IMG/VR virus record: IMGVR_UViG_3300047445_000186
Coordinates: 62,001-126,000 of that record
Direction: 5' to 3' (one strand)
Length of the DNA stretch: 64,000 nt
Each line of letters begins with the position of its first letter. Positions within the stretch are counted from its first letter, which is position 1. The notes beneath the pieces are model-generated. The model searched no databases. It was not told where the DNA came from and saw only the letters and a list, made by a program, of their open reading frames with translations. Of this stretch, positions 46,528 to 60,962 are shown in pieces. The translations under genes were made by a program, and so were the position numbers.

Positions 46528-46561
46528 AATCCTTAAATAGAAGGAACTACCTGCCCTGAAC

Positions 46562-47361: not shown

Positions 47362-47714
47362 TGAAACTCCAAGAACTCCACGAAGCAGCTGAAGGATCGG
47401 GCAAGACGATCATCAGCGATGCGTCAAAGACCTTGCGTGGGATCGCTGCAAAGCATGGGCTCGTGCTGAAGACGAACCCACGCGAAAACAAGACATCCTT
47501 TGTTTGGGACCTCGGTTTCGAACCAAACGCGGCGAACTACCACAAGATGCATTCGGGTGAAAGCGGCGTGAACAAGCTGTTCACTGATGCGATCGACAAG
47601 TTCTGGCAAGATGTCGCGAAGCTTCCAGGTGAAAAGTTCTCGAATGGTGTTAAGCTCGAGCCAGGCGTGAAACCACGTCACGGCTTCGGCCACTCGCTGA
47701 AGATCATGAAGTGA
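47361..47714 (+). CDS. late protein, MKLQEL N-terminus
   Basis: TAATG coupling. Confidence 0.8.
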   Translation: MKLQELHEAAEGSGKTIISDASKTLRGIAAKHGLVLKTNPRENKTSFVWDLGFEPNAANYHKMHSGESGVNKLFTDAIDKFWQDVAKLPGEKFSNGVKLEPGVKPRHGFGHSLKIMK

Positions 47715-47764
47715 TCCCGAAGATCAAGGTTCTCGAACAGACGATCTTGATCTACAATAGAAGT

Positions 47765-48040
47765 ACTGCAGCAATGCAGTGATTGCCGTAATTCGGACTG
47801 ACTTGATGGATTTTGGACGGGGGTTCGACTCCCCCCACCTCCACCAAAAGAAGCTTGATCGCAGGATTCTTCTGATGGGGGTGCCATGGTTTCGACAAGG
47901 TTACTGAGATGACGTACGCGGCAGGAGAGACGACCGACCTAATCGGCGTAAATGAAGTAAATGCTAACTCTGATAGCTTCCGTCTCGTCGCCTAAACAAC
48001 GACCCCGGTGAGGTCAGCCGCCTTATAAAGAAACGGTTAG
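47765..48040 (+). ncRNA. ssrA: circularly permuted (two-piece) tmRNA
   Basis: Acceptor piece first: GGACGGGGGTTCGACTCCCCC-CACCTCC-A-CCA ending 47846. A 30-nt spacer follows, then the coding piece GGGGGTG-CCATGGTTTCGAC from 47877. The acceptor helix pairs fully with G3-U70. Resume context GTAAAT-GCT; tag ANSDSFRLVA* at 47963-47995. TACAAT at 47753. Outer ends are approximate. Confidence 0.9.
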
Positions 48041-48090
48041 AAAATAGAAAGTTGATCAAGCCTCGGCCGAAGTCCTTTTGATTTTTCGCT

Positions 48091-48120
48091 ACAAGGACCT
48101 TCGGGTCCTTGTTTGTTTTC
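48091..48120 (+). terminator. terminator after tmRNA
   Basis: ACAAGGACC-TTCG-GGTCCTTGT-TTGTTTT. Confidence 0.8.
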
Positions 48121-48160
48121 TGGGCCTGTAAATACCGGTTTCATACACAGAGACAGAATC

Positions 48161-48385
48161 ATGGAACCAGCTCGCATAGAAGATTACTTCTTCAAGTCCG
48201 TAGCAGCGATCGGCGACACAGGCGACACCGACGTGCATCATTTCCAGACCGATGATGAGGACTACTTCTTCTCGCCCGGTGCGAACGAGTGGCCCGATTT
48301 CTTCACTGACGGGGTTGAAGACGAGAATCCGGCGCAAGGAAAAATTCCTGCAGAAAAACCGCGCAAAATTTTCTCGTCACGCTGA
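48161..48385 (+). CDS. small acidic late protein
   Basis: TAAATA 48129; ATG 48161. Confidence 0.65.
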   Translation: MEPARIEDYFFKSVAAIGDTGDTDVHHFQTDDEDYFFSPGANEWPDFFTDGVEDENPAQGKIPAEKPRKIFSSR

Positions 48386-48405
48386 ACCCGCCCTAAATAA
48401 GCCGT

Positions 48406-49086
48406 ATGATCCTCTCTGAACTCCATGGCGGCTTTGAAGGCCAAACACTCGAACAGGTCGTGAAGGCCTTGGTCACCAAGAACAAGCTCGGATCGGCTGA
48501 TGGTTCGAACGCGATCGTTCTATACGCGCCTTCCAAGAGCTACGTTTACCGCGTGTGGGTAGACGATGCTGGGTACGAAGAGTGGCTGAAGTACGCGGTT
48601 CAGAATCAATCGAATCCGCACGTGTTGAAGGTCCTCTCAAAGGTTCGCACTGTGCAGCCGAAGCTGGCCGGAATTCCTGACGGAAAGACCGTGAAGTTCG
48701 TGAAGCTTGAAAAGCTCGGCGATCTGACGATGGAACTCGCGAACACGATCACGACCGCGTTCCAAGCGGCTGGTGAGCTTGGTGAAGCCGAACTCAGAGA
48801 GATGGAGTACGACGGCTTCGTTGAGACGATGAAAGAAACGGCCGAGATGTACACCGATGACGGTGAAGGCGATCACATCGTAAAGACCATGAAGAAGTAC
48901 GATTCGTTCTTCAAGTTCTACTATGAGCTTTCGGTCGAGAAGGGGTACCGCGACATGCACGCTGAGAACTGCATGATGCGTGGCTCTGTTCCTGTGATCA
49001 TCGACCCATTGCATCTCGATGAGAACATCATCTCGGCCTCTGACATGGTCGGTGCCCTTGACCTCGGCGGGCGCGGTCCTCGCTAA
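48406..49086 (+). CDS. protein kinase-like fold enzyme with MILSEL N-terminus
   Basis: KLGSADGSNAIV glycine-rich-loop-like, LEKL hinge, YRDMHAENCMM catalytic loop, VIIDP; TAAATA 48394. Confidence 0.7.
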   Translation: MILSELHGGFEGQTLEQVVKALVTKNKLGSADGSNAIVLYAPSKSYVYRVWVDDAGYEEWLKYAVQNQSNPHVLKVLSKVRTVQPKLAGIPDGKTVKFVKLEKLGDLTMELANTITTAFQAAGELGEAELREMEYDGFVETMKETAEMYTDDGEGDHIVKTMKKYDSFFKFYYELSVEKGYRDMHAENCMMRGSVPVIIDPLHLDENIISASDMVGALDLGGRGPR

Positions 49087-49146
49087 CCCGAACTATTTTC
49101 GGAAACGGATTGTACAGGTCTCCGGGTCTGTGTATAATTCACTCAT

Positions 49147-49221
49147 GCGCCTGTAGCTCAACGTCGGAGCAGTGGATTCTAAATCTGAAGGTCGTGGGGT
49201 AGGCACCCACCAGGCGCACCA
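49147..49221 (+). tRNA. amber-decoding tRNA (anticodon CUA) with non-canonical D and T loops
   Basis: GCGCCTG/CAGGCGC acceptor, GCTC/GAGC D stem, GTGGA-TTCTAAA-TCTGA anticodon arm (CTA at 49179-49181 by canonical spacing), AGGTC variable, GTGGG-GTAGGCA-CCCAC T arm, A73, CCA; own promoter TATAATTCAC at 49133. Confidence 0.78.
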
Positions 49222-49237
49222 AATTCTGGAGTAGGAA

Positions 49238-49348
49238 ATGAGTAGACGCAAACAGCAGGGCGATGCGCTTTTCTTGGCCATTCTTGCCGTGGTTGTCACC
49301 CTTGTGGTGATCGCCTGGATTGTGCAGACACAGTCCACCTCTTTCTAG
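49238..49348 (+). CDS. small single-TM protein (36 aa)
   Basis: Not in track; AGGA SD; MSRRKQQGDALFLAILAVVVTLVVIAWIVQTQSTSF, ends TAG. Confidence 0.55.
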   Translation: MSRRKQQGDALFLAILAVVVTLVVIAWIVQTQSTSF

Positions 49349-49382
49349 TCGTAAATAGTTTCACCAACCAAAGGAGTATTCC

Positions 49383-49727
49383 ATGAAGCTGTAGAACCTC
49401 AAGTCGTACCTTTACACGATTTCTCGCCGCGATCTCCCCCTCGCGCAACAGGCCGTTCAAGCTGCCCACGCTGGCATCGAGCACGCCTATCAATTTGGTC
49501 GCCCTGCCGATCACCATCCCTCGTACATTCACCTGACGATTCGCGACAAGCATCAGCTTGAGCAACTCCGTGCGCGTCTCCACAGCGCAGGCATCGGCAC
49601 GTCCGAATTTCACGAGCCTTACCAAGACTGGGGTCTCACGGCAATCGCTTGCTGTCTGACCGAAGACAATCGCAATCTGCTCAAGGGCCTTCAGCTCTGG
49701 CGCCTTCCAACTCAGGAGATGACATGA
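49383..49727 (+). CDS. Pth2-like peptidyl-tRNA hydrolase with in-frame TAG at codon 4
   Basis: Not in track. TAAATA 49352, AAGGAG SD, ATG AAG CTG TAG, then 110 open codons: NLKSYLYTISRRDLPLAQQAVQAAHAGIEH...EFHEPYQDWGLTAIACCLTEDNRNLLKGLQLW. This matches the Pth2 V-x-R-x-DL...AQ-x-x-HA and G-x-x-T-x-x-A...L-x-L patterns. No in-frame ATG/GTG/TTG lies between the TAG and the conserved N-terminal motif. Confidence 0.8.
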
Positions 49728-50332
49728 AAATCACGTACAACGAAAATCCAATGGCCGCAACGATCGAGCTCGATGAGCATGAGAAGCGCGAGCTCCGCAA
49801 TCGAATCGAGATCAAGGAGCTGAAGGAGCTCTTGTACGACACGCACTTCCATCTGGTCGACGAGTACGACGGGAAGTACTTCGATCTGGCGAAGGCCCGA
49901 GAGAATGTGGAGCCTTCGTACTATTACGCGGACGACACCCCGACCTGCGGTCTCGAGAAGCGAGTCGAAGAACTCTACCAGTACGCGCTCAGTGAACAGA
50001 CGAGCTCCCACGCCGGTGATTGCACGTGCTTCGCCTGCTCCTGCACGAAGTGCTGGTTCGAAGGGATGCTCGGCATTGATACGATCAAGGGACTTGGGAA
50101 GCACGAAGGTCACAAGATCTACGCAGCTTTCAGCAGGGAAGGTATGACGGTCGATCGCTTGATCGCTGAGTGGGAAGCTGCTCCTCCTATCGTCGCAACC
50201 AAGGACTGGCATGAGGGTCACACTGACCGTTGGAATGCTGAACGAGCTAAGGCGCTCGCCTGGTTGAAGGAGTACCGGACGTTGGTAGGAACCACGACGG
50301 TCACCCCGGTTGGTGTCGATCGGACTCTGTGA
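49724..50332 (+). CDS. hypothetical protein with Cys cluster
   Basis: AGGAG SD, ATGA overlap with the Pth-like gene; HAGDCTCFACSCTKC. Confidence 0.85.
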   Translation: MKITYNENPMAATIELDEHEKRELRNRIEIKELKELLYDTHFHLVDEYDGKYFDLAKARENVEPSYYYADDTPTCGLEKRVEELYQYALSEQTSSHAGDCTCFACSCTKCWFEGMLGIDTIKGLGKHEGHKIYAAFSREGMTVDRLIAEWEAAPPIVATKDWHEGHTDRWNAERAKALAWLKEYRTLVGTTTVTPVGVDRTL

Positions 50333-50334
50333 AA

Positions 50335-50358
50335 CGCTATCTGTCACCTAATGCCTCT
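50335..50358 (-). repeat. dispersed 24-bp intergenic motif, copy 3 (inverted)
   Basis: CGCTATCTGTCACCTAATGCCTCT is the exact reverse complement of 401-424. Confidence 0.9.
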
Positions 50359-50388
50359 TAATTCACGCCTCACCCTAAAGGACTTCAC

Positions 50389-50997
50389 ATGACGTAGGTT
50401 TACCCCACTTCCTTCGACGAGCTCAAAGCAGCGATGCAATCAGGCACGCAAACGAGAGGGATCAGCTTCTGGGAGCATGGTTCACTTGTCTCACGCCGGT
50501 TCTGCGATCTCATGAACCCGAACCCGCAGATGATCTGGCGACTGCCTGCTTGGTTCACTGAGCACGCGGATTGGATTCGCGAGACGCTGATGCCTCACTT
50601 CGAGAACATCGCGATCTACCACCAATGGCACGATTGCGGTAAGCCGTACTGCAAGACGATCGACGAAGACGGCAAGGTCCATTATCCAGATCACGCTGAA
50701 ACGTCTGCAAAGATCTGGAATTCGCTCACTCAAGGACAAACTGACCCTTGGGCGAAGGACAATCGTTGGATTGGTTGCCTGATCCGCGATGACATGCTTT
50801 GTCATCAACTCCGTCCAGCCGATGCAGAGGCTTTCGCCTTGAACCCGAACGCTGTCACGCTTCTCACGACCGCATTGTGCGAGCTGCATGCGAACGCCTC
50901 CATGTTCGGAGGTCTCGAATCCGACTCTTTCAAGATCAAGTACAAGCGTCTTGATAAGTGCGGTGCTACTATTCTCAATAAACTCACGAAGGAATAA
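50389..50997 (+). CDS. HD-domain phosphohydrolase with in-frame TAG at codon 3
   Basis: AAGGA SD 6 nt before ATG ACG TAG GTT TAC CCC..., in frame with track ORF 50434..50997; EHG...WHDCGKPYC...DGKVHYPDHAETSAKIW HD motifs. ATG 50434 lacks an obvious SD. Confidence 0.8.
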
Positions 50998-50999
50998 TC

Positions 51000-51260
51000 A
51001 TGGAATTCAATTCACGCTCTACCTATCTCGCCGCCGTCAAGGACTGGCAATTCAAATACTTCTCGAAGATCGCCGAGATCCGAGCGATCAAGCTGAAGTT
51101 CAAGGACGTTCATCGTGAACAGGCGAAAGGAAAGTTCGCGCACGTGTACGGTCTTCGCAGCGAACTGCACGACGCGCAGAATGATCTTGTGAAGCTTGTC
51201 GTTCAGCGAGAAGAAGGCCGACGAGAAGCACATCGTCAGTACATCGCCGCGCACTCCTGA
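51000..51260 (+). CDS. helical hypothetical protein
   Basis: AAGGA SD, TAATCATG coupling. Confidence 0.8.
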   Translation: MEFNSRSTYLAAVKDWQFKYFSKIAEIRAIKLKFKDVHREQAKGKFAHVYGLRSELHDAQNDLVKLVVQREEGRREAHRQYIAAHS

Positions 51261-56340: not shown

Positions 56341-56414
56341 TTGGTAGTAGCATGTGTGGGATATGCAGCCCTTTGGTGGGAAGATCACAGGTTCAAATCC
56401 TGTCTACTGATCCA
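56341..56414 (+). tRNA. degenerate tRNA-like gene (Pro TGG-like anticodon region)
   Basis: Acceptor, D and T arms and CCA present; anticodon stem poorly paired. Confidence 0.45.
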
Positions 56415-59628: not shown

Positions 59629-59703
59629 GTTTACGTAGCTCAGTGGAAAGAGCGCCATCCATCGCGTGGTGGAGACGCAGGTTCGAATCCTGTCGTAGTT
59701 CCG
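59629..59703 (+). tRNA. degenerate tRNA (anticodon position ATC), no CCA
   Basis: Canonical D and T arms; loop CCATCGC; weak acceptor. Confidence 0.45.
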
Positions 59704-60879: not shown

Positions 60880-60962
60880 GGCCTCGTGGATAGTGCAAAT
60901 CGGTACAGCTACCGGGTTTAGAACCCGGACCATTGTGAGTTCGAGTCTCACCGAGGCTACCA
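60880..60962 (+). tRNA. tRNA-Leu(TAG) with short variable loop
   Basis: CCGGG-TTTAGAA-CCCGG; 6-nt variable loop; enlarged D loop; CCA. Confidence 0.8.

Follow-up and report, generated by a model that had tools for sequence, protein, structure and literature searches.

The DNA analysed here, referred to as the window, is a 64,000-nucleotide stretch (bases 62001–126000) of a 331,776-bp IMG/VR virus record estimated to be 94% complete, and it belongs to a 332-kb jumbo phage that occurs in rhizosphere metagenomes. This work concerns two neighbouring genes in the window, one for a protein with a Pth2-like fold and one for an HD-domain protein, each of which carries an in-frame TAG within its first few codons (hereafter the gate), together with a tRNA gene whose anticodon matches that stop. 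Contigs from three rhizosphere metagenome runs, all of them DNA metagenomes, were identical to the window over positions 47700–51000 at depths of 12–58x, and an independent IMG/VR contig, L002, had an identical sequence including the same TAG in the Pth2-like leader. No match was obtained when the phage collection was searched at the nucleotide level. The central features, in window coordinates, are as follows.

49147–49221, plus strand: suppressor tRNA gene with anticodon CUA, which reads UAG (ARAGORN with -ps90; Rfam RF00005).
49352–49358, plus strand: promoter-like motif TAAATAG; many relatives' leaders carry the same motif at the same distance.
49371–49376, plus strand: Shine-Dalgarno (SD) sequence AAGGAG, 6 nt before the ATG; related leaders have GGAG or AGGA at similar spacing.
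49383–49394, plus strand: first gate, ATG AAG CTG TAG (M K L stop), with the TAG at 49392–49394 and A as the next base.
49395–49727, plus strand: body of the Pth2-like gene, 110 codons and a TGA at 49725–49727 (AlphaFold2, Foldseek, homologues, and the ratio of nonsynonymous to synonymous substitution rates, dN/dS).
50377–50397, plus strand: second gate, SD AAAGGA followed by ATG ACG TAG (50389–50397), with G as the next base.
50398–50997, plus strand: body of the HD-domain gene, 199 codons and a TAA (AlphaFold2, Foldseek, ESM Atlas); callers of open reading frames (ORFs) start it at an internal ATG, 50434.

The Pth2-like gene was absent from the ORF listing because its frame has no in-frame ATG, GTG or TTG between the TAG and codon 109. 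The first beta strand of the protein begins 4 residues past the stop, and the whole domain could therefore not be made from a downstream start. The original prediction, made from the letters of the window alone, had described a TAAATA promoter, an AAGGAG SD and an MKL-stop leader ahead of an uninterrupted 110-codon frame whose stop overlaps the next start, and had argued that, with no alternative start before the first conserved strand, any functional protein needs readthrough. The leader and the frame were found exactly where it had placed them. The TGA overlaps the ATG (49724–49726) of the following gene, no ATG, GTG or TTG precedes the first strand and, as far as can be judged from the sequence, the protein would be obtainable only by decoding through the TAG. 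The codon-usage score was 0.18 for this frame against −0.30 and −0.50 for the remaining two, which is of the coding type. The promoter proposal also gained support, as 28 copies of TAAATAG, 21 of which lie on the main coding strand, were counted genome-wide, mostly 20–40 nt before start codons, against an expectation of about 5 (the window's dinucleotide-shuffle value of 0.92, scaled up). The motif is thus promoter-like, a plausible candidate for a phage promoter core, and would place a promoter directly upstream of the Pth2-like gene. A further copy, at 46534–46540, precedes a gene beginning MKLFELK (46562). The resemblance of the MKL start to an MKLxE family of late proteins, which had also been suggested, was not conserved, since the relatives' leaders read ML, MQS, MKH, MK, M, MTQL and the like.

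The second gate, 0.7 kb downstream of the Pth2-like gene, had escaped the original prediction. When the genome was scanned for an SD, an ATG, up to three codons and a TAG ahead of a long coding frame lacking a start, the Pth2-like gene and the HD gene were the only two to emerge. In relatives, the second gate was mostly MT-stop, with MS-stop, MK-stop, MNL-stop and others also occurring, and its stop was TGA in one locus, L016.

The conservation of the first gate was examined in 84 related loci taken from viral and metagenome collections, in which the stretch preceding the conserved YLYxISRRD strand was read at the DNA level, giving 57 distinct leaders of the Pth2-like gene. Gates were present in 51 of the 57 and consisted of an ATG (rarely GTG), zero to six further codons and an in-frame stop, which was TAG in 49 leaders, TGA in two and TAA in none. 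The base after the stop was a purine in every case (A in 41, G in 10); at amber codons, a following purine has long been recognised as helping suppressor tRNAs to win against release factor 1 (RF1). The distance from the stop to the first strand varied between 3 and 8 codons, and no ATG, GTG or TTG was found in this interval in 50 of the 51 gated leaders, the exception being L026, with a GTG directly behind its TGA. The gate was found in relatives down to 33% identity. As a terminator of the genome's own genes, TAG was observed in only about 6% (about 25 of 411, the counts coming from a crude gene caller). For the frame behind the stop, the median dN/dS was 0.17 (210 pairs), and no stops or frameshifts were observed in 52 distinct related Pth2-like ORFs. 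These values indicate that the frame is under purifying selection, and the substitution analysis that the original prediction had put forward thus spoke against a pseudogene. Database proteins of about 91 residues that start with MQAAHA appear to be truncated gene calls, and those that start with MKAQNLK are probably products of gene callers using code 15. A glutamine at the gate, with TAG replacing CAG, was considered for the database proteins P0005 and P0013, which show Q there, and was dropped because the DNA of L010, which matches the MKA leader, has TAG at that place.

The AlphaFold2 model of the Pth2-like protein, built on 78 homologues, had a predicted local distance difference test (pLDDT) score of 91.8 and a predicted template modelling (pTM) score of 0.84. 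The best Foldseek matches (template modelling, TM, scores of 0.70–0.79, E about 1e-5) were to archaeal Pth2, human Bit1/PTRH2 and PTRHD1. The top 15 matches in the PDB were Pth2, Bit1 or Atu0240, with TM scores mostly of 0.63–0.76, and those among the AlphaFold models of Swiss-Prot proteins were exclusively Pth2, PTRH2 or PTRHD1, with TM scores up to 0.79. The Pth2 identity assigned in the original prediction was therefore borne out at the level of the predicted fold, but not as membership of the Pfam family PTH2 (PF01981) by score, where the window protein reached 14.3 bits (E 0.047) and the gathering threshold is 23 bits. In the family as a whole, 51 of 78 members gave weak matches to PF01981, the best with E 2e-4 and none reported above the cut-off, and a PTH2 search of the window's own genome gave 12.9 bits. 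HMMER aligned residues 11–74 to profile positions 8–81, short of the DAG.T region, and searching PDB sequences with a profile brought up no Pth2. A protein search returned 145 homologues with 60–80% identity, and Q22, H25, E29, E74, P75, G80 and T82 were invariant in the family. In the Sulfolobus enzyme, Pth2 catalysis depends on the Lys of an N-terminal GK motif and the Asp of the DAG.T motif; by eye, the invariant E74–P75 pair lies near the place of the catalytic Asp. The occurrence of PTH2 in jumbo phages had already been noted by Iyer et al. 2021 (PMC7824862).

The HD protein was modelled by AlphaFold2 with a pLDDT of 95.5, and residues 6–15, which lie ahead of the internal Met, formed a confident helix. 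Its best Foldseek matches were the PDB entries 3wfo–3wfs, labelled "tRNA processing enzyme" (TM 0.54–0.60), and the ESM Atlas gave TM scores of 0.7–0.8 to proteins with HD and tRNA_NucTran2_2 domains. No Pfam match was found at E ≤ 0.01. H78, D79, K82, H99, D132 and H136 were invariant, within a motif H..HD..GKP..H..D. The modelled product resembles the C-terminal HD and tRNA-binding part of class II CCA-adding enzymes. In Xanthomonas phage XacN1 and Stenotrophomonas phage RAS14, the HD and Pth2-like domains are one polypeptide behind an MK-TAG leader (ORF364 of XacN1, L093 2390–3343; RAS14, L091 3440–4303). Complex prediction for the two proteins gave an ipSAE of 0.49, compared with 0.00 for the best control. 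The tool rated this as weak support, a mark attained by 58 of the 80 solved complexes against 2 of 110 mismatches; passes at ≤0.60 were rare among the true complexes (7 of 80). A Pth2-like/HD heterodimer is thus weakly suggested by the prediction.

The tRNA(CUA) gene lies about 170 nt upstream of the Pth2-like gene on the same strand, in a 150-nt gap, and had likewise gone unnoticed in the original prediction. At its default threshold, ARAGORN listed 44 tRNAs and one transfer-messenger RNA (tmRNA) genome-wide, 45 RNA genes in all, none with a stop anticodon. The sequence at 49147–49221 scored 43.4 bits against Rfam RF00005 (gathering threshold 29, E 2e-8), and its minimum-free-energy fold was a cloverleaf. 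All 7 bp of the acceptor stem are intact, the discriminator base is A, CCA is encoded, and the anticodon loop (UU-CUA-AA, with U33 and a purine at 37) is canonical. Its best identity to the 44 other tRNAs of the phage was 0.67, to Val and Ile tRNAs, with no clear parent; a Leu-, Ser- or Tyr-type identity was excluded by the short variable arm. Six of the seven T-loop bases and the D loop are changed in the window tRNA and its identical L002 counterpart, every stem being kept, and the relative L011 has an identical T stem. To judge by these letters, the elbow seems to have been replaced rather than to have decayed.

In relatives, the neighbouring tRNA(CUA) genes were canonical, 80 of 82 being detected at the default ARAGORN threshold. 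Of the TAG-gated loci with at least 4 kb of DNA (31 distinct ones), 26 had one or two such genes in the flank. The anticodon matched the stop across relatives, with CUA accompanying TAG gates and UCA accompanying TGA gates. The TGA-gated locus L016 carries two tRNA(UCA) genes, and its second gated gene also has TGA; L026 carries one tRNA(UCA), 3.4 kb downstream on the contig. The Pth2-like proteins of these two loci are 62% identical. In a maximum-likelihood protein tree, they fell into different supported groups, so that two changes are needed (the starred branches force two), and none of the bootstrap trees united them. These two separate TGA/UCA switches on the tree indicate that the gate stop and the tRNA anticodon changed together twice, independently, as reconstructed from the sequences.

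Pth2-like homologues with 33–41% identity were found in Rak2-like and other jumbo phages, several of which are cultured. The gates were MAQ-stop in GAP32, MTH-stop in Serratia phage BF and MAH-stop in XbC2, each with an annotated Sup-tRNA(CUA) about 3 kb from the gated gene. As the original prediction had anticipated for standard annotation, the Pth2-like gene is absent or truncated in the GenBank records of these three phages. Their HD gene (L088 4324–4893 in GAP32, L090 in XbC2, L087 in BF) starts in the ordinary way, but its frame is interrupted at codon 47 by a conserved TAG, and the records split it into three or four small hypothetical proteins. In RsoM2USA, both gates were present (ML-stop and MKS-stop), and the paper on this phage reports one CUA suppressor. 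K64-1 has an ordinary start on the Pth2-like gene and no suppressor in the flank examined. Suppressor tRNAs have been reported in XacN1 (2018), RsoM2USA and Atu_ph07, without identified targets, and the papers on the latter two offer only speculation.

The gated module lies within an island of tmRNA and tRNA genes, 1.3 kb downstream of the tmRNA and 6 kb upstream of a 24-tRNA array. The surrounding features are listed below.

47733–48086, plus strand: permuted (two-piece) tmRNA of betaproteobacterial type with the tag ANSDSFRLVA (ARAGORN, 47754–48086; Rfam).
48406–49086, plus strand: 226-aa ORF between the tmRNA and the suppressor tRNA, with faint PHROG matches only.
49238–49348, plus strand: 36-aa ORF with a hydrophobic core, possibly a small membrane protein (faint match to phrog_21895).
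49724–50332, plus strand: 202-aa Cys-rich ORF between both gated genes, its start overlapping the Pth2-like stop.
50335–50370, plus strand: short repeated motif (about 36 nt) ahead of the HD gate, recurring elsewhere in the genome on both strands; pieces of the metagenome contigs also matched it at further positions on one long contig.

The tmRNA scored 130.9 bits against Rfam beta_tmRNA (gathering threshold 84) at 47733–48058 and 125 bits against tmRNA_permuted, and its type hints at a betaproteobacterial host or donor. At least 13 distinct related loci also have a permuted tmRNA upstream, in the same orientation, with varying tags. Neither the 226-aa nor the 202-aa ORF had a Pfam or NCBIfam match; for the Cys-rich ORF, the ESM Atlas gave nothing reliable and its Atlas model was of low confidence. 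The motif at 50335–50370 is conserved upstream of the HD gene in relatives, with the translation YLSPNA, and may be a promoter or regulatory repeat. A recurring AGCATTAG..GCAAATAAGG-like sequence was also observed ahead of the HD gene in several relatives (L004, L030, L036 and L051). In the 24-tRNA array, the tRNA at 56341–56414 (plus strand) has a 6-nt anticodon loop with a two-base "anticodon" (tg), called Gln or Pro by ARAGORN. The plus-strand tRNA-Asp(AUC) at 59629–59702 and tRNA-Gly(ACC) at 60880–60962 have A34, which is unusual for these amino acids.

Several explanations of the in-frame stop were weighed. The presence of a tRNA(CUA), and TAG being the rarest stop in the genome, would suit a phage that uses code 15 (TAG = Gln) throughout, with the Pth2-like gene as one of many recoded genes. 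However, reading TAG as sense lengthened ORFs genome-wide no more than reading TAA as sense did, TAG terminates the roughly 25 of 411 crude gene calls given above, and only two genes are gated in the whole genome. No convincing mid-gene TAG was found in genome-wide scans, the other candidates resembling antisense or non-coding noise, and no release-factor homologue was found in the genome. By these measures of the sequence, the phage otherwise uses the standard code without genome-wide reassignment of TAG, and recoding throughout is extremely improbable. A recent pseudogene, or a sequencing or assembly error, would need a single C-to-T change to turn CAG into TAG, and database proteins such as P0005 do have Q at this position. 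Against this, 51 of 57 distinct relatives, distant ones included, carry the gate under strong purifying selection; the three metagenome runs and the second IMG/VR contig agree with the window; and the Q probably stems from code-15 gene callers, given the TAG in L010. Conservation, dN/dS and the identical independent assemblies rule this explanation out, and we give it next to no credence.

Two further explanations dispense with a dedicated tRNA. The UAG might simply be leaky, because very short nascent peptides are released inefficiently and a purine comes next, and be read by a near-cognate tRNA such as tRNA-Gln(CUG), in which case the gate would sense RF1 activity or translation stress, much as the RF2 gene senses RF2. 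The near-universal use of UAG, which is recognised by RF1 only, and the avoidance of UAA, the mini-ORF of 1–7 codons behind a strong SD, the atypical suppressor tRNA of the window and the tRNA-Gln(CUG) and tRNA-Gln(UUG) genes of the genome all fit such readthrough. It leaves aside, however, the matching suppressor tRNA beside the gene in most loci and does not predict the joint switch to UCA and UGA, which two lineages made independently. Once the tRNA and the covariation had been found, RF1 sensing and near-cognate readthrough were therefore downgraded as candidates for the main mechanism, and are now considered quite unlikely. Alternatively, the mini-ORF could be a ribosome loading site from which translation restarts at an adjacent non-canonical codon (AUU, AUC or GUU), so that the stop is never decoded. 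AUU is a known rare start codon, and the codon after the stop was ATT or ATC in 29 of the 51 distinct gated leaders and GTT, GTC or GTG in 10. In the remaining 12, including the window, it was AAC, ACA, ACC or AGC, with no near-cognate start before the first strand; moreover, a restart behind the TAG at codon 47 of the HD gene in GAP32, XbC2 and BF would lose a folded part, and the covariation of the tRNA would be left unexplained. A restart is thus very improbable, hardly less so than recoding throughout.

We consider it quite likely that the Pth2-fold gene is functional and forms, together with the HD gene, a private translational gate that depends on the suppressor tRNA and controls two enzymes of the tRNA acceptor end inside the tmRNA/tRNA island. 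Ribosomes would load at the SD, start at the leader ATG (49383 in the window) and make a peptide of 1–7 residues. At the gate stop, they would either terminate or, when the charged suppressor tRNA beats RF1, continue into the body of the gene, and the purine behind the stop would favour suppression. The output of both enzymes would then be zero without the tRNA and would scale with its activity, and a stop at codons 2–7 would spare the cell wasteful truncated products. The Pth2-like and HD proteins would act jointly at the acceptor (3') end of tRNAs: the former would hydrolyse the peptidyl or N-blocked aminoacyl ester, and the latter would remove a 3' block of the phosphate type. Their likely substrates are N-blocked aminoacyl-tRNA or peptidyl-tRNA, and tRNAs with blocked 3' ends. 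Counter-defence against toxins that modify the acceptor end is a conceivable use of such activities.

Several observations weigh against a suppressor-dependent gate on two active enzymes. The elbow of the window tRNA(CUA) is non-canonical, its T loop being GUAGGCA and its D loop AACGUCG without GG, where canonical tRNAs have T54, Psi55 and C56 in the T loop and G18 and G19 in the D loop, and on this sequence the tRNA may be a weak suppressor or none. In five of the 31 TAG-gated loci with at least 4 kb of DNA, no suppressor was found within the flanking DNA examined. In one monophyletic clade, the Pth2-like gene begins with an ordinary ATG and the tRNA(CUA) is nevertheless kept; the HD gene is still gated in two of its members, L077 and L079, and has an ambiguous leader in L021. 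In XacN1, an in-frame ATG lies four codons past the gate, and that copy could possibly be made without suppression. As for the enzyme, its Pfam score lies below the threshold and, by eye and not from a residue-level alignment, the GK position of Pth2 is QQ, so that "Pth2-like" describes a modelled fold and hydrolase activity is predicted at most. That the suppressor tRNA is charged and active, and decodes the gate stop, is deduced from nucleotide sequence, and the reason why both genes should be gated is likewise something that we infer.

As to the purpose of the gate, we tentatively favour a coupling of tRNA recycling and ribosome-rescue capacity to the level of stop-codon suppression, because ribosomes that suppression carries beyond UAG stops end up in non-stop stalls, and a tmRNA gene is part of the island. 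More doubtful is a leak-proof timer or lock, for enzymes whose early production does harm; negative feedback, with the enzymes acting on the suppressor tRNA itself, is unlikely. A broader proposal, which we regard as possible and put forward with reserve, is that the suppressor tRNAs of jumbo phages with the standard code mainly operate a private codon lock on the Pth2-like and HD module, as a sensor or feedback circuit working together with the phage tmRNA. In such a circuit, the amount of the enzymes would report, and possibly set, the suppressor tRNA activity or the state of the tRNA pool.

With these two genes, candidate targets can now be named for the suppressor tRNAs of jumbo phages, which have long been without known ones. 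The targets have been invisible so far because a stop right after the start codon makes gene callers skip or truncate the gene, and the gate accounts for the truncated or missing GenBank calls in GAP32, Serratia phage BF, XbC2, RsoM2USA, XacN1 and RAS14. A stop codon could serve a virus as a lock on particular genes while the genome stays unrecoded. The gate would connect suppression, tmRNA rescue and the chemistry of tRNA 3' ends, and it is directly testable, as several of the phages are cultured. No description of a start-proximal stop gate was found in full-text searches of the literature, whose coverage leaves out most subscription journals.

Both proteins have known relatives in structure. 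The Pth2-like protein shares its alpha/beta fold with Pth2 (PF01981; archaeal Pth2 and PTRH2/Bit1), PTRHD1 and Atu0240, and its QAxHA motif recalls the AQxxHA motif of Pth2, but it stays below the Pfam cut-off and its invariant residues are those of its own phage family. The HD protein has the C-terminal fold and the H..HD..D motif in common with class II CCA-adding enzymes (3wfo–3wfs; HD and tRNA_NucTran2_2), but stands alone, without the nucleotidyltransferase head.

Phages that carry their own suppressor tRNAs and recode stops (code 15, TAG = Gln; code 4, TGA = Trp) are known among crAss-like, Lak and other huge phages (PMC9523058, PMC7886860, PMC13037316). There, likewise, a phage-encoded suppressor tRNA serves in-frame stops, and a regulating or timing role has been proposed. 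In contrast, the phage described here keeps the standard code and has the stop in only two neighbouring genes, within the first 2–7 codons in the soil clade; the gated genes, which are linked to the tRNA gene, encode tRNA-end enzymes and not structural or lysis proteins, and no release-factor gene accompanies them. A cellular counterpart is prfB, the gene for RF2, in which an in-frame UGA at codon 26 is passed by a +1 frameshift when RF2 is scarce. In both systems, an early in-frame stop stands in a gene of the termination and rescue sphere and output is set by competition between release and decoding, but here the frame would be kept, by readthrough rather than frameshifting, with a dedicated tRNA as the decoder. 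The bar minigenes of phage lambda, with a strong SD, a few codons and a stop, release short peptidyl-tRNAs, the substrate of peptidyl-tRNA hydrolase. The gated leaders are similar in having a strong SD and an ORF of a few codons that ends in a stop; unlike bar, they are followed in frame by a conserved ORF lacking a start codon. Finally, engineered gates built on suppressor tRNAs have been described as a feed-forward "leak dampener" (PMC7969014) and as AND logic (PMC11669171). Amber codons in the target and a separate suppressor tRNA together make an AND gate with very low leak, and the arrangement proposed here would be its natural counterpart, conserved across jumbo phages where the engineered versions are synthetic.

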